Under the pieces are notes generated by a model. The model was given only the letters and a program-made list of their open reading frames with translations, was not told the origin of the DNA and did not search any database. Positions 1 to 61,489 of a stretch of DNA of 64,000 nt are shown here, piece by piece. A program made the position numbers and the translations under genes. Source of the stretch: Octopus sinensis (taxonomy: Eukaryota); assembly GCF_006345805.1 (NCBI RefSeq), contig NC_043002.1, positions 80,228,001-80,292,000 on the forward strand, given 5' to 3'. Each line of letters begins with the position of its first letter. Position 1 is the stretch's first letter.

Positions 1-249
1 CGCTATGTTACCGGGACGTTAACACATCAGCATCGGTTATCAAGCGATGTTGGGGGGACAAACACAGACACACAAACATATACACACACATATATACGAC
101 GGGCTTCTTTCAGTTTCTGTCTACCACAAGGCCATGGTCGGCCCGAAGCTATAGTAGAAGACACTTGCCCAAGGTACCACGCAGTGGGTTTGAACCAGAA
201 CAATGTGGTTCGTAAGCAAGCTACTTACCACACACGCCACTCCTACGCC

Positions 250-251
<2 letters not shown>
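1..251 (-). mobile_element. SINE-A (tRNA-derived head, internal microsatellite), partial
   Basis: Minus strand starts TAGGCGTAGGA-GTGGC-GTGTGGTAAGTAGCTTGC with a B-box-like GGTTCAAACCC; body matches the copies at 46000 and 61032; cut by the window edge. Confidence 0.9.
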
Positions 252-254
<3 letters not shown>

Positions 255-306
<52 letters not shown>

Positions 307-374
307 TATGTATACATAATATATATGTATACATAATATATATATGTATCTATCTATCTATCTATCTATCTATC

Positions 375-408
<34 letters not shown>

Positions 409-410
409 CA
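255..410. repeat. (TA)n and (TATC)n microsatellites
   Basis: Directly visible; source of the YLSI ORFs. Confidence 0.95.
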
Positions 411-1019
411 TCCATCGGTGTGTGGGTGTTATACGTATTTCGTCTTATTTACTCTCCATCTATATACCTATATATTTCTGTCTTCTCTTTATTGCAAGTA
501 TTATATCTTTTCTCTTTCGCTTCACCATTTTTTTCCTTTCATTCTTTGTTTATCTTCTTACATTGATCCCTATTTTCTTCCAACAGCTTCTATCGTTATA
601 TATACTACTTTGCTACTTCTATGCACCTGTTGATGTTTAGGGCAGACATGAACATTGTAGTACTTCCCATGTCCTCTTCCGCACCTTTATTGTTTATGTA
701 TCTTAAAGAAGTTTTTTTTTTATTTGCAGTTGTAATTTTTACTTGAAAGCGTGCGTACCAAACACACGTACAGGCTTACAAACGCGCGCGCGCGCACACA
801 CACACACACCACACACACACACACACACAAAAACAACACACACACACACACACACACTCATATATACGTGTTTGTGTGATTGTTGAGATATATTAATGCA
901 TGCTCTCTAACGTACAATCGCATAAGACTCCCAGAAATCGAAGAGAGACGCAAACCAACAGTCTGAAATTTCTGAACAGACACGTATATACTTACGTTTT
1001 TTTTTTTATACGAATGGAA

Positions 1020-1317
1020 CTTCGTCGGTTGCGACGATGTGTGTTTCACTTGATCCCATCAACGGAACAGCCATCACGTGAAATTTTTAACGTGCAAATG
1101 GTTGAACACTCCGCAAACACATTTACCCAAGACGTAGTTTTCTAGGAGATTCAGTGCAACTTTGACTTACAGGGTACAACTCGTTTTGGCCAGCTGATTG
1201 GATTGGACTACCATGAAATAAAGTGTCTTGCCCAAGAACACAACGCTCTGGCAGGACTCAAGCGCACGACCTTACAATCGTGAGCTGAACGTCCTAACCA
1301 CTAAGCCACGCGCCGTC
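1020..1317 (-). mobile_element. SINE-E (tRNA head, CORE-like TTCTTGGGCAAGACACTTTATTTCA)
   Basis: Head GCGCGTGGCTTAGTGGTTAGG on minus; body matches 40915-41170. Confidence 0.75.
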
Positions 1318-2189
1318 ACATTTTAATACATATTTCGTACACACACACACGCACACACGCATACATTCACACATACACGCATACACAAACATACACGCGC
1401 GAACATACGCACACATATACACACACATACACAAACATACACGCGAGCACATACACACACATATACACACATACACACATACATACTTACACACACATAC
1501 ACTATGTGTATAGATAGACATACGTAGATAGTGTGTATACACTAACAATCACACCAAGTCAAAATTATACTCGCACGCACATACAATAGACATCAACAAA
1601 TATCATAGTCGCAGCACGCAAAAACGCATCAATCAGATATACAAAAAACACACATACACACACACAGGCACTTCCATCCGCACAAACACACACACACACG
1701 CATACACACTCACATACACACATACATATCGAGATTATCACTTAACAAAAATTCCCAAAAACATCTATGTACAATGTCCACAAACACACCAGCATCCAAA
1801 CATACCGTCTATTAATACAACCATATATAATATATACACACATACAAACAAAAAACCTATCATATTCTTTCTAAAAATTTTTGCCTATATTTCTCATCTC
1901 TTTGTCTCATATTCCCCCCACCCCAACCCCTCCTCTCACATACATCCACTTGCTTTCTTTCTCTGACTCCTCTCGCTCTCTTTTTTTTTCACTCATCTAT
2001 ATTATTCTTCTCTCCAACTCCGTTCTCTTTCTTCTCTTCTCTCTCCCTCTCTCTGTCTCTCTCTCTGTTGCTCTACTTATCCTTCTTCCAATCTCTGGTA
2101 TATTTCTGTTCTTTCTCTCCATTCCCTCTTTCACTTCACTTATTTTTTCTTTTTCTTTGTTCACTTAATTTCTCCCTCTCTCTCTCTAC

Positions 2190-2239
<50 letters not shown>

Positions 2240-3662
2240 GTCTATTTATCTATCACTCTTGCATACATTTTTGCTCTCTCTCTCTAACTTCTCTCTTTTA
2301 TCTAACCCTCCCCCTCTCTCTCTCTAACACTCTCCGTCTCTTTGCTTACTTATTTTCACAATCAAACTTTCATTCTACCTTCCCCCCTTTCTCTCTCTTT
2401 CTCTTTAATCTTTCTCTCTCTATTTTCAAATCTCGATTTTCTCCTTCCTCTTACCAATTACTCACTCTGTCTGTTTTCCTTTCTTGCTTTCTCTTTCTCT
2501 GTCTGTCTCTGTCTCTGTGTCTGTCTCTCTTTCGTTTTCTCTCTCACTATCTCTTTCCCTCTCTTTTTCTCACTCCAACCGTCTCTCATTTCCGTTGTAT
2601 TTCCTTTTCTTCAGTATTTTCTTCTCGCCTGTTCCACACAAATAACTGTATGTTTTTCAATCTATATTGGCAAGAGTTTCATGTAGCGCCTGGGTGGCTC
2701 ACAATTAACAAACAACACATTATATTTTATTTTTCATTGTTTGTTTTCTTTCTCACTCACTCTACCCATTCATTCAACGATAAGAAAAAAATCTCGAAAA
2801 CTTGGCTTGCCTTTGGCTTGGCGTGTCTTGCTATCTCTTCATACAGGATCATAAAATGGATTGGCGGTGTTGAGTTGCCAATATTGCAGATGTCAGTATG
2901 ACTTCTAATACCACCAACCACACCCATTCATCTGGCTAACTCTCTATTTAAAGAGTTTATAGAGAAAGCTTCTGAGTGACCTCTCAACCGTCTAGAAATC
3001 GCAGTCAAAAATCCATTTATAAGACACTCGTTCTGTCATGAAATTCAAGGACGATGTGATAGTCAAGGTTATACAAAAACCATGGAATGTTCATTGCCAG
3101 TATTCTTTGAAAATACATTTGATTGATTAGGGTTAATTTAGGGCTTCTACGGGGTTAATCAACAAAAAAGAAACACCTACGTGGTAATCCGGCTCGCAAG
3201 AAATGGTAGCCTAATTATCCTCAAATTACACTGCTGGTGTCTTGAAAAAGACGTAAACATTGTGGTCAATATAATAGACCAAGGAAAAGATGACAAGTCG
3301 TGGGAGGAATGTCTATGAGAATCTAACTGGCATAAAACAGCAATAACAACTTCTGCTACTACTACTAATACTACTATTGCTGTTACTACAACAATCAGCT
3401 ATCTAGTTATTCATAATTCAAAGACCTCCCGCAAAGAGCTGTGGGTTCGGGTCCCATGCGTACAGAAACCCTACTTTTTTCCGTCGAGGGCGTATATGTC
3501 CCAATATTAGACTATTTTCTGTAGTCATTACATAGTGATCGCTTATAAGCGTTAAGCTTATAAAATATTATCTTTTACAGAATTGTAAAAATGGACACAG
3601 CTTACCAAAAGAAAAAAAAAAGAAAAAGAAAAAGAAAGAAAACAAAACCATCGCATATATAT

Positions 3663-3696
<34 letters not shown>

Positions 3697-3697
<1 letters not shown>

Positions 3698-3895
3698 GGC
3701 ATTCGCCATGATAGATCGCTAGCCACTACACATTCTTTATTTTCTATCCTTGTTTCTTTCTGTGTTCCTTTCTGTGGAAGAGCGTAAGGCTCGAAACGTG
3801 AAAGACTTTTTCACTTCCCGAGCATTATACTAATACATCTGTTTGTTGTCTACACCACCTGTCTTCGTCATTTATGCTTTTGCGAATTCTCCCCA
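3697..3895 (+). mobile_element. Penelope-type terminal-repeat-like element with hammerhead-like motif
   Basis: Closely similar to 33155-33335; contains CTGTGGA-A-GAGC-GTAAG-GCTC-GAAAC-GT. Confidence 0.55.
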
Positions 3896-4491
3896 CCACC
3901 ACCTATATATATATATTAATACATTCACAATATAATGATATAGAAATATAAACATATATATATGAATGTGAAAAATATGGAATAGAGGGAGTAATAGATT
4001 TTAAAAAAGAGTTTTTGGTACCATATTTAACGGAAATGAAGTATTCCGAAGATTGTTTCTAGAGTTCATTCAAAGAGTACATGTGAGTCTTACGATTCAA
4101 TTCCAAGGAGTGCCCCCATCATCAGGGGAAAAAGAAAAAAATAGTATTTGCACTAGAAGTGTATTAAATGGTTTTAATACATTTATTTTGAATTTTTAAA
4201 AGAAATGTCTTTCTATATTTCATTATTCTTATCTATATTTTTATCTATACTCTATTATGCTTATATATCTATATATTTATTTGTCCTTGCATATTTTTAT
4301 ATTTCTATATCTTTATATTTTAAATGTATCAATATATGCTTTAGACAATTCTATCATATTACACCCGTATATGTATACACCAATCGTAGTCTGCCTGAGT
4401 TGAACTTCTCTATATCTTTACTTGTCTAGCGTCTCGGGTTTGACTCAAGCATTTCCACGCTTTTTATGCGTTTCTTAAGAAAATTTATATG

Positions 4492-4551
<60 letters not shown>

Positions 4552-4618
4552 GTATGCATTTATGTATGTATGTATGTATGTATGCATGCATGTATGTATG
4601 TATGTTTATGTATATATA

Positions 4619-5870
4619 CAGACATGCAAGAAGTAAATAGACATCTTTAATTTTCAAAGTCTCTGATCTAAGCGTTTTAATATGCTTTCAGTGGTGTAGA
4701 ATTTACAATGCAATTATTCATTTTCATTCCAGGTTCCATTATATTAAACATTTGCGAAGTAACCATGGCACGCACAAAAAATTCAGCAGAAATGTCAGAT
4801 TTTCAAAGAAGTCGTATTGTTGGGCAATCTGATGCGGGACTTAGCCAGCGAAAAATTGCCGAAAATCTTCAAATTCCACTTGCTACTGCTAATAGAATTA
4901 TAGTGCAATGCAAAATCCAAAGAAAAGAATCAACAGATTCTCGGCCAGGCCGACCTGGGCCCTCGGAAGGGGAGCTTCGCTGTTTGAAGAGAATTGTGGA
5001 AAAACGAACCCCGTTCGAAGGCTTCTCACAGTGCAAAACAGCTAGAAGTTAGTCGAAGAGCGTGTGTTACATATCTGCATAAGCTTGGGTATTATGGACG
5101 AGCAGGTAGAAGAAAACCTCTCGTTCAACCAATTAATATCACGAAAAGAAAAAATGGGCTAAGGCGATCTCAGAAAAATCTAGTTCATTTGGGGATAGAG
5201 TGATTTTCTCAGATGAATCCAGATTTGCCTTATTTTCAGACAGCGGGTGTGTTTGGGTCTGGAGGTTTCTCAATCAAAACTTTGATTTCAAACGATTCCA
5301 ACCAACTGTGAAACATGGTGGTATGGGTAGCTGTCACCAGCAACGATCGTTTTGAGCTGATCGAATGTGTTGGAACCATAAACTCTGAAAAATACATCGA
5401 AATACTTAAGCAAGGACTACGTCCGATGTATATACTCGATAACATAACAAAAAAATGAGTTTTTATTCATGGAAGATGGGGCTCCATGCCACAAAGTGAA
5501 AAGGAATCAACAATGGCTGACTGAAAATGGGATAAAAAAGCTTCCTTGGCCGAGCCAATCTTCTGACATGAACCCAATTGAAAATCTTTGGAACATACTA
5601 GATAGAGCTATACGAAAAACTCGACAGAAACCTAAATCTCAAGATGAACTGTTTCGATCGTTGCATAAAAAGTGGCCAGAAACTCCACAAGAGACAACCA
5701 CAAAGCTCATCAGTTCAATCCCAAAAAGAGTTTCTGAATTAAAAACTGCAAAGTGAATGTCAACTAAATACTAAAGTATGTAGTTTTACCTATCGATTAC
5801 GTTTCAATTGTTCGCTTTGCGTATTAAATAAAAGATTTTGAAAATTAAAGGTGTCTAATTACTTTTTGCA

Positions 5871-5876
<6 letters not shown>
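4619..5876 (+). mobile_element. Tc1 (DD34E) DNA transposon, full length, decayed
   Basis: 44-bp imperfect TIRs (4619-4662 vs 5833-5876, 5 mismatches), flanked by TA, enclosing a transposase pseudogene. Confidence 0.92.
4765..5756 (+). pseudogene. Tc1 transposase pseudogene
   Basis: HTH start MARTKNSAEMSDFQRSRIVG, VIFSDESRF near 5200, EDGAPCH and WPSQSSDMNPIENLW. Exactly 34 residues lie between the second D and the E. Several frameshifts and stops. Confidence 0.92.
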
Positions 5877-5907
<31 letters not shown>

Positions 5908-6387
5908 GCACTCGGGCTGTTCGGACTTAGCCCAAGTATAAATTTAGTAAATTGAACGTGATTTGCTAGCTGATTTAATTTCTGCCAACGCTGATTTGAA
6001 GTAAGTATTTTCAGCCAAATAACTCGGGCTACTTTTATTTAGCTAGGTAGCAGTTCATTTATTTTCTTTGGGCGTCTGGCGGTTGTCTTAGAGGTGCCCT
6101 GTGTCCAAAAAAATCACCCGTAGAAGACCTTGTCTCGATATCATTCACACGCGCCTGACTCAGGCTCAAAAGTTACAGCCCCTGCTGTTATCTATAATCG
6201 TAAAAATTAAAAGTAATTCAAATTAAATGTTTTCTTTAAAAAATAAAATTTCTATAGAGATTGGGATTTAAATTCCAATCTATGAAAAGTTTTCGTTCTA
6301 CAATATTCTTGAAGGGACGAAAAATTACCCAGCAACTCGGGCTATTACGAATGAGCCTGGTAGGTGTAAAAGGTTAGTTGGCAGCTC

Positions 6388-6947
6388 GGATCTTTTCATT
6401 TTGAAGTCCAGCTTTTAAGTACCAATTACGCACTGGTGTCGAGAATTTTTTTTCCCAATTTATATCACAGCTTCCGACAAGCTGGGAGCATCCTTTTATG
6501 AAAAAATATTTCGCAAATTTTTACAATACTACTCACACTCCACGCAAAAACTCGAGACCGATTTAGGCATATTATTGTTTTGTTTGTGTTGTTTCTGGCC
6601 CTTCAAAACCATGGGAGAAGCCTTTTCGGTAAAAAAAAATAAAGAAAATATTCAAAAAATATCGTTAATATTTTTTTATTGGGCGACGAAATTAATCGAT
6701 TTAAGAGATATAGCTGTTATTTCTAGCACATGTAGAAGACAGAAGAAGAGGTAAATAATTTGAGCTCGAATGCTGCGATTTCATTGGTTAAAATTCGTAA
6801 AAATTAAACTACGTTTAAGTTACGAATAACAATTTTGTTTTCAATTTTGTTTACAATAATGTTTTCTTTTGACACATTCTACCAGTATACGAAGTTTCAA
6901 ATTTTTTAGTTAACTAGGAAAATCTGGCCTTCAAAATGAAAAGATCC
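6388..6947. mobile_element. MITE with GGATC TIRs and 8-bp TSD (Merlin-like by end structure)
   Basis: TIR GGATCTTTTCATTTTGAAG(T/G)CCAG at both ends; flanks GGCAGCTC (6380-6387) and GGCATCTC (6948-6955). Confidence 0.85.
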
Positions 6948-7262
6948 GGCATCTCTTGTCAGAAGTACATCGCTGATGTTTGGTGCGCACTCAGCTGTCG
7001 TTATTTGATTGCCGTTATTCTGCGCGTCTGTGTGCAAAATCAGTTGTGTTTTGCAAGGTTGCTTTATTTTTACCCGTAACTTGTAACTGGAGAGAGACAT
7101 AGTACCAGATATACAAATAAGCCATTTGGGGCTAGAAATAAAGCGGAAAAATGTGAAATTCTTCGAGCCGGCATGTGTCTTATGCGGAATCTGTGATGCG
7201 CCCGAGTGACGCTGCTGACCTGGAGTCATATATATATATATGTGTATGTGTGTGTTTGCGTG

Positions 7263-7315
<53 letters not shown>

Positions 7316-7496
7316 ACACACACACACATTTCTCGACACATCTCTCTATTTCGTTCCAGCTCTCAGCCGAAGCGTCGTCACTGAGAGCCAGCAGGCAATC
7401 AGCGAACACAGACGCCAAGCGGGCGTGACCGGTACTTGCAGCGTCATCATACGGCTCGCGCCTGTAGGGGACTGGGAGCGGTTCTGATCTCAGTCG

Positions 7497-7540
7497 TATG
7501 TATGTATGTATGTATGTATGTATGTATGTATGTATGTGTG

Positions 7541-7574
<34 letters not shown>

Positions 7575-7810
7575 ACTAGCTATATCTATATATATATATT
7601 AGTAAATTCGTATGTATATATGTATTTATGTATGTATGTATGTATGCATGTGTGTATGTATGTATGCGTGTATGCATACATGTATGTATTTACGCATGTA
7701 TGCATGTATGCATGCATATGTATGTATCTATGTAGATAGATACATACATACATATATACTTACATATACATGCATACATACATACATACATACATACATA
7801 CATACATACA
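7497..7810. repeat. (TATG)n/(TATC)n/(CATA)n compound microsatellite
   Basis: Directly visible. Confidence 0.95.
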
Positions 7811-8171
7811 GATTTTACTAATTCGGCATCATTGAGAGAGAATCGAACTGCTGGATTTGTGACTCTGACGGAGAACCGCTCGTTCAACAAGAACATATAT
7901 CTTACCCAACAAGTAACCACTTCAACATACCCTCAAAAAATACCCTTAAATGATTAAGAACCTTAATAAGAGAAACAGAAAATATTAAATTAGAAGCAAA
8001 ATGGAACTGCATGATTAATGAGTTACGTATAATGAAGCTTTTGCTTCGGAATCATCACTTTCACCACGAAATGTGTCCAAGACATTTGGAACTGGTTATG
8101 ACATTGACACAATATGTTCTTCAGAAACAGTGTTAACTCATTTGGTTGAATGGATTTTGAAAGCACTATAT

Positions 8172-8521
8172 ATTTATTTACTACCCACAAGCGGCTAAAC
8201 ACAGAAGGGACAAACAAGGACAGACAAACGGATTAAGTCGATTACATCGACCCCAGTGCGTAACTGGTACTTAATTTATCGACCCCGAAAGGATGAAAGG
8301 CAAAGTCGACCTCGGCGGACCGGCAGAGGAAATACCTATTTCTTTACTACCCACAAGGGTCTAAACACAGAGGGGACAAACAAGGAGAGACAAACGGATT
8401 AAGTCGATTACATCGGCCCCAGTGTGTAAACTGGTACTTAATTTATTGACCCCGAAAGGATGAAAGGCAAAGTCGACCTCGGCGGAATTTGAACTCAGAA
8501 CGTAACGGCAGACGAAATACG
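8172..8521 (-). mobile_element. SINE-B dimer, 3' part of the host SINE split by the LINE
   Basis: Two tandem bodies (GTCGACTTTGCCTTTCATCCTTTCGGGGTC...GTGGGTAGTAAAGAAATA) lacking the head; the head lies at 13886-13934. Confidence 0.92.
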
Positions 8522-8765
8522 AATTTCTTTATTGCCCACCGGGGCCAAACATAGATATGGACAGTACAACTGATGGGATCAGTGAATCGATATGATTTTA
8601 CATAAATGTGACATCAAAAATAAAATACAATACATAAAAATCGAATGGAATACACAGTACAAAACACTACAAATGAAGCGATGATCAAGTTACGCTCCGA
8701 TCCCACAAGCCCCGATCTACCGCTGATACCTTTTTATTTTTCCTTTTTTTTTTTTCCACGTCTAT

Positions 8766-11700
8766 TCACACGGTTCCTTGCACGCACAACACTCGTGCAA
8801 CATACTTCCATCTCTTTTGGAACGTACACTCTAACAGACACCTCTTCTCCAGCCACAGTTTCCTTTTCAAATGAAAAGAAAAAAAAGGATCGTAAATCGT
8901 CACCAGAGATAAAGTTGCCTGTCTTAATTCCTTTTATCCTAGTATTCCATACAGCCTCTTTTGCTATTGCTACAACCGTGAGAAAACAATTCTTACCTTC
9001 GTTCGTTAGAACTCCCGGTGGGTCAATTTTTATAATTGACTCAGTCGACAGCCGTACTCTTCCTTCGCCGACAACAGATGTTCAGCATAAGCCCACATTT
9101 CAGTTATCTCCGGACACTGAACAATAGCGTGAGGGACGGTTTCCCTGTCCCCACCGCATCTTGGACAGGTCGGCGACTGACGTTTACCATGTCTTGCGAG
9201 TTTATCCCAAACGGGCAAGGCACCTCTGTAGCATTGCCAGGTTAAGGACTTTTGGAAGTTGTCCAACGTTCTCAACCCGAATGTACGAAGAAACAAGCTG
9301 TCCAGTTGAATAAATCCGAGACCTAGAGTCGACCCCAGGCCATCGTCGCATTCAGACTCTACCAACCCACTATATAAAATCCGTGTGGAACCCCCACCGC
9401 TGGCGTTGCCCGAGCGCCGGAACAGCAAGAGGGCCTTACGGCACTCTTTATGCCACTCACTCGACCTCGGTCTACGAGAACACCAGGCTTCCTGTTCGCA
9501 AAAACTCTTGAACTCAGGGAACATTTGTCTGGCCAGCGGAGACCACACCCGTTCACTATCCAGGAGAATCCAGAGGTGCCTCAACCTCAACGCATGTCTG
9601 CGCATCATTAACCAAGGCATCCCTAAACCTCCATTTAAAGGCTTTTGACAGCAGACAGAGCGTTTCACAAGTGGCGACCTGCCCTTCCACAAAAAGCGAA
9701 AGAGCTGTCTCTCCAACCTGATCAACCACGAATCCGGACAGGGCACGAAGTCAGGCGGTAGGTAATGACCGATGCGATAAACACATTGGCCACTTCCGCC
9801 CTCCCTTTCAGGGATAGCCACCGCCAAGACCAAGTCTTGACTACTGCAGCCACCTGCTCAATACCTCCGTCCAGTTCTTCTCTATCTGGAGGCCTGGTCC
9901 AAACCAGACTCCCAGCAACTTAACCGGTCCCTCCGTCCAGCGCCTAACAACACTGTCTGAAGGCATCGACTTGCCAACCCAGGTGCCGAGCTGCAAGCCG
10001 ACCGACTTTTCCCGGTTAATCTTTGCTCCTGCTACCTCCTCGTAAGCCTCAATAGTCTTACCTACTTCACGTAGGCGTACCACTGTGGTTACACTGATAG
10101 TGATATCATCCGCGAAAGCCGTAACAAACTCCTCTAGTCCTGGTTCTCTCGGGATGCCACTCAACCTTTGCAGTAATGGCTCGAGAGCCATCACATACAA
10201 AAGTGGTGAAAGCGGACATCCTTGACGAACCGAGCGTCTGATGCAGAACGGCTTCGAAAGGAAACCGTTCACCCGAACTATCGAGTCAATGTTGTGGTAC
10301 AAAGCGATAAACCACCCGAGGAAGCCAAGGCCCAGGCCAAACCGCGCAAGTACAGTCGCTAGGTATCGATGGTCAACCCTATCAAAAGCTTTAGACTGGT
10401 CCAAATGCACCAATGCCCCACCTTTGCCAGATTTATTACCAAACCTCTCTATGGTATAGCGAATAAGATGGAGGGTATCCTGAATGGTTCTGCCTGGGAT
10501 GGCACATGTCTGTGCCTCCCCGACTATACCATTCGCGACACGCGCCAACCTTTTTGCTAGAACCTTGGCCAAAATCTTCACTTCTGCGTTTAACAGAGTG
10601 ATGGGCCTGAAATTCTCTAGAACGTCCCCCTTATCCGGGTCCTTTCTGACCAACGTCACTACTCCCCGGCGCACAGATCTGGGGATAAACCCATTCTGTT
10701 TCCAGTTCGCGTACACGTCAGTCAGTAGTTGCCCGAACAAGTCTGGCATACATTTATACAGCTCGTACGGAAGACCATCAAGTCCCGGTGACTTACCCGC
10801 TTTACAATCGGCCAAAGCCTCCATCACCTCCTCAAGTGTGATTGGCCCTTCGCAAGACTCCGCATCCGACCCCGAGAGGCACGGCAGCCCGGTAAGAAAG
10901 TCCTCGAGGGCTCTCCCACCACCAGGACCGCCGTCACCCCCGAACAGCTGGGCGAAGTACTCCCGAAAGACCTCACACATTTTCTCGGGTTCGTTTATCA
11001 AGACACCATTTTGATTCGTCAAAGACCGAATAGAGGAACTATTTCCTTGCCGAGCTTCCACCACTCGGGCCCATCCAGCGGCTTTGATTCCTTCACTTCC
11101 CATTGCACGTAACTTAGCTCTGGTAATACTTCCCATGTGGTGGGCTTCAAGATGCTGGTTTAACTCCAGTCTTTTTCACCCTCGCTTGGTCTGTATTACC
11201 AGTCCTCCAGGCTTCTTCTAGTTCCTTAACTAGACCATCTCCTATTTTACGTCCCTTCTTAGCTAAACTTATGCTAAACCTAATAGACTCATATTTGATG
11301 GCTCTTTTTAGGGCGTACCACCATTTGTTATTAATGATGGTACCTGTTAATGCCCTCTGTATTAACATCTTGATCCGCTTTCTGTACTCCTCAATCGCCA
11401 AAAGGGACGTATTGAGTTTCCAGTAGCCAGATCCCTGTCTATGCAACTTATCTACCGTCAGTTTACAGGTAACCATCTTGTGGTCACTGTAGCTGACTAG
11501 AAAAAACTGTGGACACTCAACTATGGACTTATCTTTTTCTCTAATTAAAATCCTATCTAGATATGTTCTGGTAGACCCGTCACTATTTGACCACGTCCAC
11601 TGTGGAGTGTTCGGGTGCTCCAACCTATATGGATCTGCTAGCTGAAATTGACTTAGCAGATCCCGAAAGCCTGTGTTACATTTTCTGTTCATGTTCGAGT

Positions 11701-12163
11701 TTGAGCCAACACAATCTGTGTGTGCTGCACATATTGTATTAGAGTCTCCTAACACTACTAGTGAATGCGACGTGGCTAGGAACTTTCCTAGGCCACGAAA
11801 ATATTCAGTTTGCGGGCCAATAATGTTTGGTGCATAAATAGCGACCAGCCTGATTGTCTTGCCACAACTGAATGTCAAGTCGAGAACGACCAGCCTGCCT
11901 TCTGGGTCAGAAAAAACCAACTTTTTCTCGGCTACCCGGTTTCTTTTTAGTAGGACCAACACCCCACCCCCCCTCCCCCGACTCGGAGAAACGTATTTCT
12001 CGTAGCCGTTCAGGAGGGGGAGCAGATCTCTTGGCCCCTTCACCCGGGTTTCCGTTGCAACAATTACATCCAAATTTCTCGACCTGATGTCATTCAGAAA
12101 GCGTCCTTGCTTCCAGCTTGACAACAGGCCATGAACATTTAAACAACCAATGTGAATAGCCAT
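8766..12163 (-). pseudogene. LINE ORF2: APE endonuclease, reverse transcriptase, zf-RVT (about 4 frameshifts)
   Basis: APE motifs CLNVHGL, ATETR, VLGDSN, WTWS, YLDRIL, SDHKMV. RT motifs PGLDG, FRPITLLN, QGCPLSPLLY, FADD. C-terminal CPRC..ETVPHAIVQC. Pieces are track ORFs 11147-12166, 9841-11136 and 9030-9833, plus a shifted tail (AKEAVWNTR...FQKRW...GTV*) ending at 8766. Confidence 0.93.
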
Positions 12164-12169
12164 CACTTA

Positions 12170-13732
12170 CCTGTTTAATCAGGATTGTCCGGTGGAGGGG
12201 ACCCTCCACCTTTTTTTTATCCAGGGTCGGAGGTGGACGGTCTTGGGAAATAGATTTGTCAAAATCCCGTCTCACCACCGACACAGAATTATCAGGTGGA
12301 GGGGGATCTCCACCTTTTCCTTTTCTCGCGGGATCGGAGCTGGTAATCCATGAAATATCGACTTGTTAAAATCTAATCTCAATGAAGATACAGTCTTTCT
12401 GTACTTATTTTGTAGAATTCTATAAGTCTTATTTGAGACTTCATATATGTCGTAATTGATAAATTCCTCTGAAAGGTTATCAATTTTTTTACAGTCTTTA
12501 TGAGTTGAATGTCTCTCATGAGCTCAGTATCTTTAGTGTATACGGCTATTATGCCTTTTTTTTCTTTTTTCTCTTCTGGCAGTCTTTTTTGGTCGTTGTT
12601 CTGTAGTAGTCGCCGCTCTCGGCTGGGTTGCTGGCTGTATTTTTCTTTGTTTGTTGTTTTTTTCTCATCTGTTTCTTTCTTTATCTTCTTCCTCTTTGTC
12701 TTTTTTCTCCTCTTCCTCCTCTTCTTCATTTTCCTTGCAGTTCCTTCGAATGTGGCCTAATTGACCACATAAAAAACATCGAGGTTTTCGGCCCTCAACA
12801 AACACCACGAGGTTCTCCTCCCCTACCTCAATTGTCTCAGGAATTGTTTGAATTATTTTAGGGTCCGCTTGAATGAGAAGATTATTGTTTTACCATCCCA
12901 GCGTGGGTTTTCCGTAGCGGTAGCCTGGAGGAGAGTAATTTTTTCTACCTCTTTGATTAGGACTGCCGCCAACAACCACATAGGTTCGACCTCTGGCGGG
13001 ACCCTTGTAATTTTTATTCGCGACGTCCTCATCCCCCATATAATAGGGTATTAACTCCACGTCGTTCGTTTTCAACGTTTCCACTACTGAGTTCTTGTGT
13101 GCTATTTCTTTATTGGTGAACCTTACTTCCACCGTTCCGAATTTTTTTCCTCTTCTCAGAAATACTACGTCGCCCAATATTGGCTTTAAGCACTTTTCTA
13201 TTTTCTCTTCTGACATTCTTTCAATTTTTCTATTTTGTAGACAATATGTTTTGAAAATTATTGTTTTTTGCTTTTCTTCCTGTAATAACTTTTGCGGAGG
13301 TTCAATTTTCACACTGTTGTCATTTATTTCCATCATTTTGCTGTATTTCATAATTTCGCTTTTATTCGTCGACAGTATCTGGGTTCCACCCCCAGCAGCC
13401 AACGCAAAACTTTTTTTTTCCATTTTTTGGTTCTATCTGGATGCTAGGCACATCAATTATTCTCTTCGACACAATGCTTTGTTCTCTGGCAAAGTCGGAA
13501 ACTCTTCTGGTGAAAGTTCTGACGAGCTCTCAGACACATCTCCAAAAATATCAAATATATTATCCTCTCTGCTATTCCTTCTTGTAGCGGGGGAAACCCC
13601 TATTTCCTTGTCTGTAGTTGGCTCCTCGCCGGACATGTATTTCCTCCTCTCAACAGGAGAAACAAGTATTTCTGCTCCAACGGTAGGCTCCATGCTAGAC
13701 GACATTCTTCCCCCCAAAGGGGGAATGAACAA
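12170..13732 (-). pseudogene. LINE ORF1 (gag-like), frameshifted
   Basis: Track pieces 13457-13732 and 12890-13423 (RRM-like FGTVEVRF); my translation gives VFVEGRKPR-CFLCGQLGHIRRNC (CX2CX4HX4C at 12737-12778), then a charged low-complexity tail. This is a Tx1-type ORF1 layout. Confidence 0.8.
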
Positions 13733-13885
13733 CGCGTGCTACCACAAGCACTAAGTGTTTTCAATTGAAAACTCCAACAGTTAAGTTATTCAACAGTTTA
13801 ACAAGAAACAACAGTTGTTAACAATATTAACACCACGAAACAGCCATTCTTACTTCACGAACACATGCGCGGCAGACGAAATACG

Positions 13886-13934
13886 GCTAAGCATTTCGCC
13901 TGGCGTGTTAAGGTTTCTGCCAGTTTGCCGCCTT
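13886..13934 (-). mobile_element. SINE-B head (5' part of the split host SINE)
   Basis: AAGGCGGCAAACTGGCAGAAACC...GAAATGCTTAGC on minus; host TSD ATTTTGAAAGCACTATAT at 8154-8171 and 13935-13952. Confidence 0.92.
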
Positions 13935-14029
13935 ATTTTGAAAGCACTATATTCTGAAACGTTTATTCTTCCGCTGCGCGGGTTTTAGCTGCTTATTTTT
14001 AACGTATGCAAATTCAGCTGCTCGATATA

Positions 14030-15460
14030 TTTTAGTCTTATTCTGATTAATTTATCCTGCAGCATGAAAACCTTCAATCTTTCTTGTTCATTTATAAAAC
14101 TGCATTGTTCTAGACCCTTTAGCACTTCACCTGTCAACTGTACAAACTTATCAATAGAGATTCTTTTCTACTACAGTTTTCTCATTTTCATTGCTGCTAT
14201 CTTCCATTTTTTCCTTTCTCGAGACTGACAATCATCTGCTGTCTATTTCTGAGCCAATATTGTGATGAACAGTAGCTACAGAGTCATCTACAGTCATCTA
14301 TTCTACAAGATTGTCTTCATTCATTATTGACAACAGTATTAGTCAGATCATGAACCAAATAAAGTAGTTCCTGTATAACCTAATTTTCTTTTGAAGCCTT
14401 ACAGTCTAAAATCATTTCCAGTGTCTTCGTGACATAGACATTAAAACTGATCACAATTTATGACTTCAGTTTTTAGTGAGGATGTATCCTCAAATTTCAA
14501 AGAATCGCATTTCTTTACTGCCCACAAGAGACTAAACATAGAAGGGTCAAACAAGGACAGACAAAGGGATTAAGTATATTACAGTGCGTAACTGGTACTT
14601 AATTTATCGACCCAGCAAAGTCGACCTCGGCGGAAATTGAACTCAGAACGTAACGGCAGACGAAATACCGCTAAACATTTCACCCGATTCGTTAACGTTT
14701 CTGCCATGACATCTTAAGGAACTAATGTAGTAGTCTTCAAGGACTAAATTCATTTGTCAGGCGCTTCATAAGTACGGAACAACATACAGATTTAAGAGAA
14801 CGGGCTTTGTAATTGTCTAATTAATGAGGTTGGAGTGATAGAAAAAGAACATATTTTCGAGTATGTGGAGCAGTATGAAAAATAAGCATTGTCTGTAGTG
14901 ATTTTGGCAAGAAGGCCCCAGTGTCCTCTTGCTTTGAGAACAATAAATTTTTGAACCAGGTCTATTAGAATGTTGGATATTTTCCACTTCTTGTTCACAT
15001 GATAAATCACCAGAAATTGCCTTACGGTTGAAGATCCATAATCTTCACCGATAATCAGTAATTTACACTGGTGACTTACAGCTGCAGTTATTTATCTCTT
15101 CAGTTGTACTTCAAATTTTGTAACCCTGCTTTTCGAAATCTAACCTCAATTAGGGCGATGAGTGACGGTCTGGGATTCTTTGTCATATACATGTAGTAAA
15201 TAACTTTATTTCTACAGGGTGACAATCAACGCAGTGTCTATTTAAAATATTGAAGCACTCCATACTTGTCATATGTCAGGCATTTTATTGATGTGAATTT
15301 TCAGTCCCATTTAGATTAGACACCTCCACACTATACCAAAACGAAAACAATTACTGTCTTTTGGTTCTCCGACTCTCATATAAACCAGCATTTCAAACCA
15401 AATAACTCATTTAACCTGAATTAGGGATTCTACAGAGTATTGTGAAAACAAATGAACTTG
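14030..15460 (-). pseudogene. Highly decayed pogo/Tigger-like transposase remnant, interrupted by SINE-B
   Basis: Manual translation gives ITAAVSHQCKLLIIG, TDNAY, TPTSLI and C-terminal EVLKGLEQCSFINEQE, loosely like the DDE_1 family; many stops. Confidence 0.35.
14503..14708 (-). mobile_element. SINE-B monomer with internal deletions
   Basis: Tail, GTCGAC core and head TGGCAGAAACGTTAACG visible. Confidence 0.85.
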
Positions 15461-23908: not shown

Positions 23909-24121
23909 GGGTGGCCCAAAAGTAAGTTTACAGTTTTACATCTATCTCTTTCGCATTCACATATTAACTGTTTAAATCTTAATTATAAAAAAATATGAAA
24001 CTATTATTTTATGTTAATTTAGTTAATTGTAAGATAGAAATTTAAATGTAATAAAATATTTTTGAAAAGAAATTTAAAGTGCCTACGTGATAACTGTAAA
24101 CCTAATTTTTGGGCCACCTTG
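23907..24121. mobile_element. Tc1/mariner-type MITE
   Basis: TIR CAGGGTGGCCCAAAAGTA(A/G)GTTTACAGTT; TA at the right end; an extra right end at 24183-24236; another copy at 40324-40537. Confidence 0.85.
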
Positions 24122-24296
24122 TATGTAAATAGATATATCTATCTATATGTTTTTCTCTCTCACTCTCTCTCTCTCTCTCTCTAAAGGAAATTTAAAGGGC
24201 CTACATAACTGTAAGCCTACTTTTTGGGCCACCCTGTATGTGAATAGTCATATCTATCTTTATGTTTCTCTTTCTCACTCACTCACTCCCTCTCTC

Positions 24297-24342
<46 letters not shown>

Positions 24343-24365: not shown

Positions 24366-24720
24366 AAGGCGGTTGGCTGGCAGAACGTCGCACAAACTGC
24401 TTAGCGTCATTTGGTGCGATTTTAAGTTCGTTCGAATCGGGTCGAGGTCGCCTTTGCTTTTCAACATATCGAGGTCGATAATATATGTACCAGTTGACCA
24501 CTGGGATCGATTTAATCGTTTTAAATCCTACCGGATATTTGCTGGCCTCGTGCCAAAAAAATTTGAAATCAATATTAATCGTGATGAAGGCTTACGAGCT
24601 GGCAGAACGGTAAGCTCGCCGGACAAAATGCTAAGCGGCATTTCATCCGTCTTTGCGTTTTGACTTTCAAATGACGCCGGGGTCGACTTTCTCTTTCATC
24701 CTTTCGGAGTGGATAAAATA
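24366..24720 (+). mobile_element. Two degenerate SINE-B copies
   Basis: Heads at ~24366 and ~24592; B-box and GTCGAC cores visible. Confidence 0.7.
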
Positions 24721-25129
24721 AGAAAGAATTGAAGACCTGGGAGAGATGTAACCGACTTACCATCTCTCTTAATATTGGTGGACTTGAACCCAATAATAAT
24801 GGTGCTGTTAAGACGGCTGTAGTGGTGGTGGTCGTCGTCGTGGTCGTAGTCGTCGTCGTGGTCATAGTGGTCGTCGAGGTCGTCGTCGTCATCGTAGTAA
24901 GTTGTGCTCTGCATAGACATGTCACCAAGGCTGTCCAACCGTGACCGTCTCGTTTTTATTTCCAACATCATTCAATGCGTATCTTTATTGATGTATTCAT
25001 TCATTATCTATTTTTCCTTTCATTTTTCTTTTGAAGACGACAAGGTGAATTTGAGGGCGATTTGCCTGCTATGTCTAGCAGATGGTGTGAGTACATAGAG
25101 ATTTCCTTGTTGGCTCCTAGATGTTCTTT

Positions 25130-27273: not shown

Positions 27274-27289
27274 TATTTGTATGTAATTT

Positions 27290-28450
27290 TTGCCCTTCAT
27301 CCTGTTCGGGGTCGATAAACTAAGTACTAGTCCCGTATTGGGGTCGATGTAATCGACTAGACTCATCCTTCAAACTTCAGGCTTTGTGCCTTTACTAGAA
27401 AGGATATTTTGTCCGACTCACACGCGACGAGCTGGCTGAAACCTTGACTCGCCGGCTAAAATGTTTCGTAATACTTCTTCAGGCTTTACGTTCTGAGTTC
27501 ATTTCCACCAAGGTCGACTTTTGATTCCATCCTTTCATAGTCGACGAAATAAAAATCAGTGAGACACTAAAATCAATGTAATGGGCTAGTTTCCTATCCC
27601 AAAAGTTAAAGTTTTTCGTACAGAGGCGTCTTGCAGAAAAGACATTTCTTCTGGTTCTTGACGTTCTGAGTTCAAATCCCGCCAAGGATTCATAAAATAA
27701 AGCACCTGCCAAGTACTAGAATCGTTATAATTCACTACTCTCCTCCACTAAATTTTAACCTTGTACTCATATTATTAATGATCATATTTCATATACCCCT
27801 TTTCCAAGGCGGCGAGCTGGCAGAAACGTCAGCGCGCCGGGTGAAATTCTTAGCTGTATTTCGTCTGCCGTTACGTTCTGAGTTAAATTCCATCGCGGTC
27901 GACTTTGCCTTTCATCCTTTCGCACTAGGGTCGATGTAATCGACTTAATCCCTTTGTCTGTCCGTGTTTGTACCCTCTATGTTGAGCCCCTCCTGGGCAA
28001 TAAAGAAATAAAAATCGTTACTGTGGCGGGTAAAATGCTTTGTGGCGTTTATTCTGACATATTCTGAGTTCAAATTCCGCCGAGGTCAACTTTGGCTTTT
28101 ATTTTTTACGGGGTCGATAAATTAAGCACGAGTTGAGCCCCGGGGTCGATGTAATCGACTTACCCACTACTCCAAATTCTGGTCTTGTGCCAAAATTTGA
28201 AGCCAATATCTTCTGCCTGCAGGCTGCGAACTGACAGAATCGTTAGCCCGCTGGGCGAAATGCTTAGCAGCATTTCGTCTGTCTCTACATTCTGAGTTCA
28301 AATTCCGCCGAGGTTGATTTTGCCTTTTATACATTCGAGGTCGATTGAATAAGTATCAGTTCCGCACTGGGGTCAATTTAATTGACTTAATCCCTTTGAC
28401 TGTCCTTGTTTATCCCCTCTATGTTTAGCTTGTGAGTAATAATGAAATAA
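27290..28450 (+). mobile_element. Cluster of about six SINE-B copies and fragments
   Basis: Repeated heads (27427, 27806, 28011, 28222), GAGTTCAAAT B boxes and GGGGTCGATGTAATCGAC cores. Confidence 0.85.
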
Positions 28451-28670
28451 ATATTTTCCGTCTGCGAAATTTTCTTTAAATTTTTCATCTGTTCTATTCA
28501 TTTCTAAATTATTCGTTCCTCCATTTTCCATCTTTCGTTTCGTTTTTAGTTTCTTTTGATATTCTAGCCTACCACTGTTCGCAGGCTTTTCCTTCAGATT
28601 TGACCTTCCAACCGAAGCTGGCTGTATATTTCATTTTGGCAGATTGATAAAAAAAAAAAGGATCGGTTAT

Positions 28671-33931: not shown

Positions 33932-33978
<47 letters not shown>

Positions 33979-34087
33979 GCATGTATGTATGTATACATGT
34001 ATATATGTATAAATGTATGTATGTATATATGTATATAGGTATGTATGTATGTATGTATATAGGTATGTATGTATGTATGTATGTATG

Positions 34088-34118
<31 letters not shown>

Positions 34119-39002: not shown

Positions 39003-39215
39003 AGTAGTGAGCTGACAGAAACATTAGCACGCCGGGCAAAAATGCATAGCGGCATTTCGCCTGTTTTAACGTTCAAATTCCCCCGAGGACGGCATGGCCT
39101 TTCATCCTTTCGTAGGTCGATCAAATAAGAACCAGTTGAGCACCGGGGGTCGATGTAATCGACTTACCCCCTTCCCCGGACTTGCTGGCCTTATGCCAAA
39201 ATTTGAAACCAATAT
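39003..39215 (+). mobile_element. SINE-B with the alternative tail (…CCAAAATTTGAAACCAATAT)
   Basis: GAGCTGACAGAAACATTAGCACGCCGGG head. Confidence 0.8.
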
Positions 39216-42121: not shown

Positions 42122-42191
<70 letters not shown>

Positions 42192-42195
42192 CTAA

Positions 42196-42229
<34 letters not shown>

Positions 42230-42292
42230 AAAGATAGATAGGCATATATATATACTTAGATAGATAGATACGTAGGTATATATATATATATA

Positions 42293-42339
<47 letters not shown>

Positions 42340-48860: not shown

Positions 48861-49174
48861 GATAGATATGTTTCTTTATTAACCACACAGGGCTGAACAC
48901 AGAGGAGGCAAATTACAAAGTAGAGCTTTTCTTTTGGGGGAAGAAAGAAAAAAAAGGGGAGTAGGTTTTCGATTAAAAGAGATCGTAAACAAAAAAAGAA
49001 GGAACAAAAACGCTCAATAGGGATCGTGTATCATGAAATGTCATGATGTAAAGTGTAAAGGGGGAAACAGATAAGGTCTATCCGTGGAAAAAAAAGCCTA
49101 CGGAAAAGACCATGGTAACCTCGGTCAATAATGTCACATGTTAACACATTTGTTTGCAAGTAACTCTCTGTTTT

Positions 49175-49176
49175 AA

Positions 49177-49220
<44 letters not shown>

Positions 49221-49243
49221 ATAAGACAAACAGACAGACAGAC

Positions 49244-49306
<63 letters not shown>

Positions 49307-49307
49307 C

Positions 49308-49398
<91 letters not shown>

Positions 49399-49845: not shown

Positions 49846-50646
49846 ACATATTGTAGTCATGCGTTTCGAGAAATACAAACGCTTTTAGTATCACTTTAAT
49901 TCACTACTTCAACAACAAAGCTTGTTGGATTGCTCATAGATACGTATCAAGACTTGATACCACATATCTTTCTATAAATGACTAATCATAATACACAAGC
50001 GGCTGACTACTAAACTATAGAACGCTAAATTAAATGACAGATAACGTTATATAACTGATATGGTACAGAATATTAATTATATCACCGTGCCATGTTAGTT
50101 AACTTGAGTTTGGATGTCAACTTTAAGCATTACTGATTACTAAAGCATGATCCATGAATACTGTTTTTCTCCGATATATGAGTTATCTCATTTGGACAGA
50201 CCTAACTGAAATTCTGTTGAGTTTTAGTAAGATTACAGCATGCTATCCTACTGTCCTGTTAGTCTTTACGATATACTGAGAACATCTGTTAGTGGAATGT
50301 AATGAAATTAGAAGATACTTTAATTCAGTTCCTACATATTGTAGGAATATTTTAGACTAATACCCTAATACCCGCCTGTGTACAGAGACAATTAAATCTG
50401 AGCAGAATTTCCCGCTCTGCACCCTAATTGATTGTTCAAATGACGTAGGTAGCATTAAAAACCTGACTGAATATACATGTGTGTGTATACATATAAGTGT
50501 GTCTGTGTGTGTATACATATATGTGTGTCTGTGTGTGTATACATATATGTATGTCTGTGTATATATATATATAATATACACATTGACAATGTTTCTACAT
50601 ATGTATACTTCCAAACATCTGCAAGCTCATACGATCATATGTCTGA

Positions 50647-50690
<44 letters not shown>

Positions 50691-50754
50691 TGACAATGTT
50701 TCTACATATGTATACTTCCAAACATCTGCAAGCTCATACGATCATATGTCTGAG

Positions 50755-50789
<35 letters not shown>

Positions 50790-50835
50790 CACACATGCAT
50801 ACATACGCGTATCTATCTATCTATCTATCTATCTA

Positions 50836-55818: not shown

Positions 55819-56319
55819 AATATTCACCAAATTTTACACCTCTAAATGCACTTTTTAAATAGTAACAAACATAGTAAAAACAACTCTTTGTTTAAAGGTA
55901 ATACTCACGTTTTCAACAGATGACCAGAAAACTGTATTTGTTGAAGATGTGAGACACACTTCAAGTGCAAAGCTAAGATTGAGGCTTGTTTCGATGTTAT
56001 TCAAAAGAATCATGATATCCATTCGCATCCGACAAATCTCAGCTACATTCTTGTTTTAGAATCAGTTGAAAATGTAAAGCAACACATAACGCAATCAGAT
56101 GAAGCGACACATTTCTATTTAACATTTGTATAAACGACTACCTTTAAGTGTATATGTGCATTACCACATAAAGACATACTATGATGCAACGAGAACTTAA
56201 AACCCACGAAAAGTGATGATTATTTTTTCATCGTTAGTAAAATAAGGATGCTTAATACATTTTCATATATGCTTCTTAAAATACCGCTATATACATTTCC
56301 TATCAATATTACGTAAACT

Positions 56320-56735
56320 AAGGCGGCGAGCTGGCAGAAACGTTAGCACGCCGGGCGAAATGCTTAGCGGTATTTCATCTGCCGTTACGTTGTGAATTCA
56401 AATTCCGCCGAGGTCGACATTGCCTTTCATCCTTTCGGGGTCGATAAATTAAGTACCAGCTACGTACTGGGATCGATGTAATCGACTTAATACCTATGCC
56501 TGTCCTTGTTTGTCCCTTCTATGTTTAGCCCCTTGTGGGTAATAAAGAAATAGGTATTTCGTTTGCCGCTACGTTCTGAGTTCAAATTCCGCCGAGGTCG
56601 ATTTTCCCTTTCATCCTTTCAGGGTCGATAAATTAAGTACCACTTACGTACTAGGGTCAATGTAATCGACTTAATCCCTTTGTCTGTCCTTGTTTGTCCC
56701 CTCTATGTTTAGCTCCTTGTGGGCAATGAGAAATA
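56320..56735 (+). mobile_element. SINE-B dimer
   Basis: Full unit 56320-56552, then a second unit starting at GGTATTTCGT directly after tail AAAGAAATA. Confidence 0.92.
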
Positions 56736-56935
56736 AGAATTGTTGGCACGCCGGGTGATATGCTTAGCGGCGTCTCGTCCGTCTCTATGTTCGGAGTTAA
56801 AACTCCGCCCAAGCCGATTTTACCTTTCCCTCTTTCGAGGTTGATGAATCAAATGTCACTGAAACACAGGGGTCGATATAATCGACTAGTCCCTTCCCTC
56901 AAATTTCAGGCTTTGTGTCTTTAGTAGAAAGAATT
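56736..56935 (+). mobile_element. SINE-B (other tail variant) lacking its first ~16 nt
   Basis: Starts AGAATTGTTGGCACGCCGGG immediately after the dimer tail. Confidence 0.8.
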
Positions 56936-57020
56936 ATTAAAATAAAGGTACTTAAAACATTTTTCACGCATGCTTCTTAAAATGATGTTTTATACATTTC
57001 CTGCTAACATTAAGTAAACT

Positions 57021-57240
57021 AAGGCAGCGAGCTGACAGAATCGTTAGTACGCCGGACAAAATGCTTAGCGGCGTTTCATCTGTCTTTATGTTCTGAGTTC
57101 AAACTCCTCCAAGGTCGATTTTACCTTTCCTTCTTTCGCCGTCGATAACATAAGTACCAGTTGATCTCTGAAGTCGATGTAGTCGACTTGCCCTCTGTCC
57201 CGAAGTTGCTGGTATTGGGCCAAAATTTGAAGCCAGTGTT
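57021..57240 (+). mobile_element. SINE-B, uninterrupted, alternative tail
   Basis: AAGGCAGCGAGCTGACAGAATCGTTAG...CCAAAATTTGAAGCCAG. Confidence 0.85.
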
Positions 57241-61459: not shown

Positions 61460-61489
61460 ATACATATCGAAATAATATTATAGATACGT

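Follow-up and report, generated by a model that had tools for sequence, protein, structure and literature searches.

A LINE nested within a SINE-B dimer

The window, as the whole 64,000-nt stretch of DNA analysed is called here, carries on its minus strand a LINE copy that is flanked directly by units of a short repeat family, SINE-B (Table 1). On the downstream side of the LINE, 8521 to 8337 corresponds to SINE-B positions q50-233 and 8336 to 8171 to a further unit, and on the upstream side 13934 to 13870 corresponds to the SINE-B head, q1-65. This setting introduces a confounder overlooked in the sequence-only reading that first linked the two elements: inside a SINE-B array, the tail assigned to the LINE might have been plain SINE sequence.

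A repeat search located two perfect nested direct repeats at the locus, an outer one identical at 18/18 positions and an inner one at 16/16, and removal of the LINE, its tail and one copy of the inner repeat joins 13934 to 13870 with 8505 to 8337 in a gap-free, full-length SINE-B. The nested target-site duplications (TSDs) and the restored unit thus give the order of events: a SINE-B dimer was inserted with an 18-bp TSD, and the LINE then entered its first unit at q49/50 with a 16-bp TSD. Both 16-bp copies have a private C at q50, a position taken by G, T or A in the remaining SINE-B copies of the alignment, and the LINE junction reads AAAT-TC-GTATTTC, as opposed to AAAT-AG-GTATTTC at ordinary junctions between units. 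The two host units are 92-98% identical over their bodies and their tails match each other at 31/34 positions, whereas the LINE tail matches them at 26/34, and so is not the tail of a third unit of the host array. Enclosed as it is by the perfect 16-bp TSD, the 34-nt tail is not target sequence: the inserted LINE itself ends with it. The earlier reading had named a SINE fragment adjacent by chance as the finding that would undo it; such a fragment is discounted by the 16/16 duplication that encloses LINE and tail together and by reconstruction of the empty site. The TSDs are of similar length in the two elements: that of the LINE has 16 bp, and two of SINE-B have 18 bp and about 15 bp.

Table 1. 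Coordinates of the LINE, the SINE copies and the tandem repeats in the 64,000-nt window
Feature	Coordinates	Strand	Basis or remark
L1-superfamily LINE copy, defective, 5,348 bp	8522..13869	-	Pfam domains; bounded by 16-bp TSD
LINE 3' tail core	8522..8555	-	TCTATGTTTGGCCCCGGTGGGCAATAAAGAAAT(T); 30/34 identical to SINE-B 56518-56551
LINE 3' UTR stretch collinear with SINE-B-specific 3' module (q171-233)	8522..8579	-	Upstream 26 nt, p=0.002
ORF2 C-terminal part, stop codon 8736-8734	8734..9081	-	Frame translation; alignment to homologous protein P0001
ORF2 segment with CCHC zinc-binding motif (zf-RVT)	9033..9833	-	Pfam PF13966, E 1.8e-8
ORF2 reverse-transcriptase segment	9844..11136	-	Pfam RVT_1, E 1.3e-29; frameshifts separate it from its neighbours
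ORF2 apurinic-type endonuclease segment	11150..12166	-	Pfam Exo_endo_phos, E 3.4e-11
ORF1 region: RRM-like segment and CCHC zinc knuckle, three in-frame stops	12668..13705	-	Frame translation; zf-CCHC
LINE TSD, downstream copy	8506..8521	-	CGTATTTCGTCTGCCG, SINE q50-65; 16/16 with 13870-13885
LINE TSD, upstream copy	13870..13885	-	CGTATTTCGTCTGCCG; repeat search, repeat family D3
Host dimer TSD, downstream copy	8154..8171	-	ATATAGTGCTTTCAAAAT; 18/18 with 13935-13952; repeat family D5
Host dimer TSD, upstream copy	13935..13952	-	ATATAGTGCTTTCAAAAT; repeat search
Head (q1-65) of the host SINE-B split by the LINE	13870..13934	-	BLAST, 91% to SINE-B consensus
Rest (q66-233) of the host SINE-B, own tail 8370 to 8337	8337..8505	-	Gap-free join
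Second SINE-B unit of host dimer (q50-68 and q85-233)	8171..8336	-	92-98% identical to first unit
Reference full-length SINE-B, 233 nt; tail module 56490-56552	56320..56552	+	BLAST/alignment
Second SINE-B unit (q50-233), abuts the first directly	56553..56735	+	BLAST
SINE-B copy with internal deletion	27806..28010	+	BLAST
SINE-B copy with degenerate TSD of about 15 bp, ATATYTTCYGYCTGC	28221..28449	+	TSD by eye, 12/15 identical
SINE-B copy, 5'-truncated at q13	14509..14706	-	BLAST
Heavily 5'-truncated SINE-B tail	48871..48912	-	Upstream sequence SINE-like (CCTCT...), not LINE-like
SINE families A/B/C	24382-24759, 27289-28449, 39009-39215, 56320-57235, 61489-61935		
Example repeat tracts	7496-7810, 33932-34117, 42122-42326, 49177-49398, 24065-24297, 50560-50796		Microsatellites and longer tandem repeats

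Structure and class of the LINE

ORF2 of the LINE contains, in this order, Pfam matches to Exo_endo_phos, RVT_1 and zf-RVT, the arrangement of apurinic-type endonuclease (APE), reverse transcriptase (RT) and CCHC motif. Among relatives with a solved structure, human L1 ORF2p scores best (E 8e-57) and is collinear over about 850 residues, whereas R2 reaches only 2e-20, and the ORF2 domains together with this relative place the LINE in the L1 superfamily. ORF1, which ends near 12668, has a zf-CCHC match (Pfam E 3.5e-5, above the cut-off) and an RRM-like segment that was read from the sequence only; Pfam returned no match to RRM and none to Transposase_22 in ORF1. The CCHC knuckle and the lack of a Transposase_22 match set ORF1 apart from that of mammalian L1. 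The element was initially described as Tx1/L1; the domain order and the human relative uphold the L1-superfamily part of that name, with an ORF1 that is non-mammalian and Tx1-like, and membership of the Tx1 branch itself is putative.

The 3' UTR of the LINE comprises 212 nt (8733 to 8522). An A-rich run at 8731-8755 was considered as an old poly(A) tract, with the remaining 212 nt transduced, and was rejected because the run is in frame and encodes C-terminal lysines at the point where the ORF of a 55% identical homologue also stops. The copy has three in-frame stops and at least three frameshifts, about six disabling lesions in all, and these, with TSDs that are perfect at 34/34 positions, suggest a fairly young insertion with about 1-3% decay. 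SINE-B copies diverge by 8-20% whereas the LINE TSDs are perfect, and by this comparison most SINE-B copies would be older than the LINE copy, a difference that counts against a partnership of the two. Between ORF1 and ORF2, at 12180-12381 (-), about 100 bp of the LINE are duplicated in tandem (71% identity), within a lysine/glutamate-rich region of low complexity.

SINE-B and its sister families

SINE-B has a consensus of 233 nt and is represented by eight copies or units in the 64 kb, being short, non-coding, multi-copy and TSD-flanked. It has two sister families in the window, SINE-A and SINE-C, and the three have a common head and body, from q1 to about q170 (up to ...GTCGATGTAATCGACT), beyond which the 3' modules diverge: the SINE-B-specific module occupies q171-233 (63 nt), the A tail is ...CTTGCTGGCCTTGTGCCAAAATTTGAAACCAATAT and the C tail is ...CAAACTTCAGGCTTTGTGCCTTTACTAGAAAGGAT. 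The three families are a clear case of modular tail exchange. A tRNA-derived head was considered for SINE-B and dropped, as neither ARAGORN nor Rfam, even at E<=10, reported a tRNA in the head at 56320-56420. The only Pol III-type feature visible by eye in the head is a B-box-like GTTCAAATTCC, and SINE-B is presumptively of Pol III origin. The 85-90 bp or so upstream of two SINE heads, at 56235-56319 and 56935-57020, are homologous to each other (AAAATAAGG...ATTACGTAAACT and AAAATAAAGG...ATTAAGTAAACT, respectively), which could reflect a local duplication of some age or a composite repeat of larger extent to which both belong.

The common 3' tail

On the minus strand, 8555 to 8522 of the LINE reads TCTATGTTTGGCCCCGGTGGGCAATAAAGAAAT followed by T, and on the plus strand the SINE-B tail at 56518-56551 reads TCTATGTTTAGCCCCTTGTGGGTAATAAAGAAAT. 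Pairwise local alignment gives 30/34 identical positions with one 1-nt gap, and BLAST of the 233-nt SINE-B against the window recovered the LINE tail with E values of 1.9e-6 and 1.4e-6, so that the match is not due to chance. The 30/34 identity proposed in the initial reading was thus reproduced by the alignment. The same reading had stated that other SINE copies carry GGGC, which they do (27993-28009, about 56718 and about 14525), and that neither element ends in poly(A), which agrees with the absence of a poly(A) run from 8/8 SINE-B tails and from the LINE. All nine termini, the eight SINE-B ends and the LINE, stop at ...AAAGAAAT(A/T), and the flanking sequences are unrelated. The four positions at which the LINE tail departs from the SINE-B consensus fall inside the spread seen among SINE-B copies (22-31/34).

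The homology continues beyond the 34-nt core. The 26 nt immediately upstream in the LINE have a weaker, indel-containing similarity to SINE-B, aligning with the first part of its module (ATCCC..TTGT.CTGTCC) with a score of 19, compared with 8.2+-2.9 for shuffled sequences (p=0.002); 0/1,049 26-mers drawn from the LINE body as a control reached that score. SINE-B carries a 10-bp internal duplication in this first part. The homology thus extends over about 58-63 nt, and the last 58 nt or so of the LINE correspond to essentially the whole 63-nt SINE-B-specific module. The homology starts within a few nucleotides of the point at which SINE-A, -B and -C diverge, which is the pattern that descent of the SINE-B-specific module from the LINE would produce. 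LINE and module are 88% identical over the terminal 34 nt, and far less so further upstream, a gradient that fits old common descent with a constrained terminus, and not recent capture of a SINE or a template switch.

A candidate terminal hairpin

One and the same interrupted hairpin of 11 bp, UCU.UGUU..GCCC-loop-GGG(C/U)AAUA.AGA, is predicted for both tails, with four unpaired bases after it. The GCCC/GGGC stem-loop originally proposed for the two elements forms the top of this hairpin in both partners, as GCCC/GGG(C/U). All four differences between the LINE and SINE tails lie in the bulge or the loop, or are GC to GU changes or the reverse. That part of the proposal which concerns pairing stands, since both tails can pair; the folding energies, however, are no better than those of shuffled sequence (z=-0.2 for the LINE and z=-1.35 for the SINE). 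For an 81-nt SINE 3' region that includes a second hairpin, z is -2.2. The covariation check that had been suggested for the stem lent it no support: across the nine tails pairing is 94%, with 0 compensatory changes and uninformative controls. A stem-loop in the LINE and SINE-B tails is plausible on these predictions rather than demonstrated.

Relatives of the LINE and their 3' ends

Self-BLAST and tblastn found no second LINE copy in the window, and the exact look-up of the window RT ORF returned no record. No close copy of the LINE was found in metagenomes by a pattern scan and a protein-guided scan (0 in both), and none in viral contigs. A scan of genome contigs gave one match, in Natrialba, which was judged to be due to chance and has no tRNA there. 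A search of the literature for the SINE and tail sequence strings found no paper. The closest protein among 5.8 billion is 55% identical and is encoded on a 3-kb contig that ends 113 bp past the stop codon.

A more distant LINE family, represented by two ENA contigs (L002 and L003), is 36-38% identical in ORF2. L002 has a single copy (7673-14178) with a 12-14-bp TSD and an end, ...CCTTCTGTGTA-ata-TACGCAGAAATAAAA, that has no poly(A). L003 has three LINE copies at 1-14186 in direct head-to-tail tandem, with the junction ...CAGAAATAAA/GCAGACTAGAAGG... between them. The terminal hairpin of this family has 9 bp and a z of about -4 in all variants; its loop varies, and one A-U to G-C compensatory change distinguishes copies that are otherwise 92-97% identical. 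The 5' arm of the hairpin begins with TCTATGT, as does that of the window tail. Judged by these sequences, this L1-superfamily lineage would generally end in a hairpin plus a short A-rich stub.

Within the 63 kb of fetched loci, the best match to the window SINE-C tail (27354-27407 and 56883-56934) is the LINE 3' terminus of this same family, at about 14130-14175 in L003 and about 14110-14160 in L002, with a Smith-Waterman (SW) score of 33 over 40 nt, compared with 13.7+-2.3 for shuffles. The alignment suggests a second LINE/SINE pair, with SINE-C, from the same LINE lineage, which would thereby repeatedly match tails of this SINE superfamily. For the SINE-A tail, a similarity to the LINE 3' end in L003 was dismissed, as it was not the best among the loci and its p ranged from 0.003 to 0.2. 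SINE-B and the window LINE showed no significant similarity to the L003 3' end (p 0.06 and 0.14), with TCTATGT the only common motif, and in three further relatives (L004-L006) the 3' regions had no informative similarity.

Explanations for the common tail

Four things about this pair are observed directly: the homology of the tails, the position of the LINE tail at a true LINE terminus, the precise ends without poly(A), and the class of the LINE. The common tail makes it most likely that SINE-B borrows the copying enzyme of the LINE lineage. The favoured explanation, which we hold to be probable with some reserve, is a stringent partnership, in which the RT of that lineage recognises the common tail and copies SINE-B in trans; recognition, mobilisation in trans and the presence of the tail throughout the LINE family are the parts of it that we infer, and the evidence comes from one LINE copy, a dead one. 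On this reading, target-primed reverse transcription placed the near full-length LINE in the head of a SINE-B dimer that was already present, duplicating 16 bp, and the RNA that it copied had no poly(A) but a terminal module of some 58 nt. In its final 34 nt the module would fold into an AU-rich, interrupted hairpin with a GCCC/GGGC cap and leave four bases unpaired after it; SINE-B bears the same module as a family-specific tail on a head and body that it has in common with two sister SINE families. The RT of the LINE lineage would recognise the terminal hairpin or its sequence, so that the cDNA starts at a fixed position (...AAAGAAAT), and SINE-B transcripts with the same tail would be copied in trans by that enzyme.

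The tail module might instead be common to several related LINE families, so that a sibling LINE drives SINE-B and the window LINE shares only the ancestry of its 3' end. We regard this as unlikely, but several observations would be accommodated by it: 4/34 positions of the LINE tail depart from the SINE-B consensus, the upstream 26 nt are far more diverged and contain indels, and the lineage does include families with related but distinct 3' ends, as the L002/L003 family and the window LINE illustrate. A survey of bivalve elements warns of exactly such misassignment (PMC11481361). The window holds no other LINE with which the comparison could be made, and the terminal hairpin and end, which in other stringent pairs are the part required for recognition, are the most conserved part here, at 88% identity.

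A tail of SINE origin is harder to reconcile with the data, in either of the two forms that it could take. In one, the tail would have been added to the LINE copy or its source by an RT template switch from SINE-B RNA to LINE RNA, or by read-through (3' transduction) into a downstream SINE-B fragment. Composites of this kind exist in the window, where SINE units abut; a single LINE copy is seen, and the identity of its tail to SINE-B copies (24-30/34) is within the range found among those copies. Such a chimera, however, predicts uniform identity and an abrupt boundary at a random position in the SINE, and what is found is a drop from 88% to indel-rich similarity and a start of homology within a few nucleotides of the SINE-B module boundary. 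With 34/34 TSD positions unchanged, a 34-nt tail that had only just been copied would also not be expected to have four differences, and a distant relative of the LINE has a terminal hairpin of its own that starts with TCTATGT and lacks poly(A), all of which makes a chimeric insertion improbable. In the other form, the 34 nt would be the remnant tail of a third SINE-B unit, with the LINE replacing q66-191 and being itself tail-less (a trimer with a deletion). The LINE does sit in a SINE-B array, and the sequence past the tail starts at q50 as it does in ordinary units (56552/56553 and 8337/8336), but this history requires a 126-bp target deletion with no TSD and leaves unexplained the 16/16 repeat, the private C at q50 and a junction with TC in place of AG. 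The tail, moreover, is 26/34 identical to neighbouring tails that are themselves 31/34 identical to each other, and the homology upstream of it, inside LINE-specific sequence, would have no explanation; chance adjacency of this sort is very improbable indeed.

Insertion-site pattern

Among the nine B-type or LINE 3' ends, three exactly abut SINE q50 (56552/56553, 8337/8336 and, for the LINE, 8522/8521) and two abut a position near q17 (56735/56736 and 28010/28011), whereas 0/8 A- or C-type ends abut a SINE head, sitting instead 11-20 nt upstream of q1 of the next SINE. For 5/9 against 0/8 the hypergeometric p is about 0.02, with the events possibly non-independent. Orientation is uniform among all SINEs within each cluster. 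The position of the LINE at a recurrent SINE-B junction is suggestive, and is either coincidence or a common preferred nick site; abutment at q50 and q17 is compatible with one integration machinery common to the LINE and SINE-B. Elsewhere, SINE-B has entered targets that are not SINEs, such as the one with the TSD ATATAGTGCTTTCAAAAT.

Two further sites resemble the LINE target CGTATTTCGTCTGCCG, namely the degenerate TSD of the SINE-B at 28221-28449 (28205-28220 ATATCTTCTGCCTGC and 28450-28465 ATATTTTCCGTCTGC) and the flank of the truncated SINE-B at 48871 (ATATCTATCTGTC). A formal test of this resemblance gave p=0.08, which is not significant, and it may point to a motif in the target or to what is left of older SINE heads.

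It can tentatively be proposed, as an idea that is more doubtful than the partnership itself, that the LINE lineage and SINE-B are target-selective in the manner of Tx1, preferring q49/50 (...GCTTAGC/GGTATTTCGTCTGCCG) in the head of the partner SINE with a second site near q16/17. Repeated hits would build nested head-to-tail arrays in the same orientation, and insertions of SINE into SINE would be resolved seamlessly by homology to give the [1-233][50-233] 'dimers'. If true, an animal L1-superfamily lineage would join stringent recognition of a poly(A)-less 3' hairpin with self-targeting integration, and if the pattern holds genome-wide it would explain the oriented SINE clusters of this SINE-rich genome.

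Relation to known LINE/SINE pairs

A common 3' tail is the standard criterion in the field for a LINE/SINE partnership, and L1-superfamily elements are usually seen as 'relaxed' mobilisers that depend on poly(A). Mammalian L1 with Alu or B1 is such a relaxed, poly(A)-dependent system. The window pair resembles it in belonging to the same enzyme superfamily and, by inference here, in the mobilisation of SINEs in trans; it differs in that neither partner has poly(A), with a specific terminal sequence in common instead, and in an ORF1 that is not of the mammalian Transposase_22 type.

LINE/SINE pairs with common 3' tails, the stringent type of Ohshima and Okada, are well known, for example eel UnaL2/UnaSINE1 and zebrafish ZfL2 (PMC4176376, PMC3747384). 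As in these stringent pairs, the SINE 3' module in the window is homologous to the LINE 3' end and most nearly identical to it at the very terminus, the sequence near the end, which is precise and without poly(A), can fold into a hairpin, and the SINE is modular, with a common head and body and exchangeable tails. UnaL2 and ZfL2, however, belong to the L2 clade and have short tandem repeats after the stem-loop, whereas the window LINE is of the L1 superfamily and has a unique AAAGAAAT end with an embedded AATAAA, no terminal repeats and a stem without covariation support. By analogy, the window pair may work like the UnaL2/UnaSINE1 type while not being a member of the UnaL2/L2 group.

Closer in class are L1-clade pairs whose 3' end is specific, that of maize (LINE1-1_ZM with ZmSINE2/3) and that of Chlamydomonas (L1-1_CR with SINEX-3_CR; PMC3472496). 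In these, LINE and SINE have a non-trivial 3'-end sequence with a stem-loop in common, and the window pair has such a sequence with a candidate stem-loop. These cases are from plants and a green alga, and L1-1_CR and SINEX-3_CR still end in poly(A); the maize stem-loop has compensatory mutations whereas the candidate of the window pair has none. The window LINE, in contrast to the plant and algal pairs, has a CCHC knuckle in its ORF1, and the genome around it is animal-like and rich in microsatellites.

In its APE, RT and CCHC-containing ORF2 the window LINE also resembles the Tx1 group, whose elements are target-specific, as Kojima and Fujiwara reportedly described in 2004. The group comprises target-specific L1-superfamily LINEs such as Xenopus Tx1L and Keno, Mutsu, Dewa and others (PMC3747384). 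A further likeness is that the window LINE has a small-RNA-like repeat as its target, namely the SINE head, and entered it at exactly the position (q49/50) where SINE-B units recur; against this, target specificity here is drawn from one LINE insertion and the SINE-B junctions, and the other SINE-B targets are unrelated.

The partners listed in the survey of molluscs and bivalves are CR1, CR1-Zenon, L2 and Nimb, with L1/Tx1 not among them (PMC11481361). The kind of partnership described here is well known in general and rare for L1-type elements, and this particular pair may already be catalogued. A common tail by itself is a routine result of annotation, and interest is added by the insertion-site pattern and by the clade of the LINE: if an L1-type lineage of animals ends in a specific hairpin without poly(A) and donates tails to SINEs, this would support stringent recognition as ancestral in the L1 clade.

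Other features of the window

Ten other long ORFs in the window gave no Pfam match, and no host gene was recognised among window ORFs of at least 130 aa. The window is very rich in microsatellites, among them (TATC)n, (TATG)n, (ATAC)n, (TA)n and (TTA)n, and two longer tandem repeats are present, with periods of 115 bp and 107 bp.
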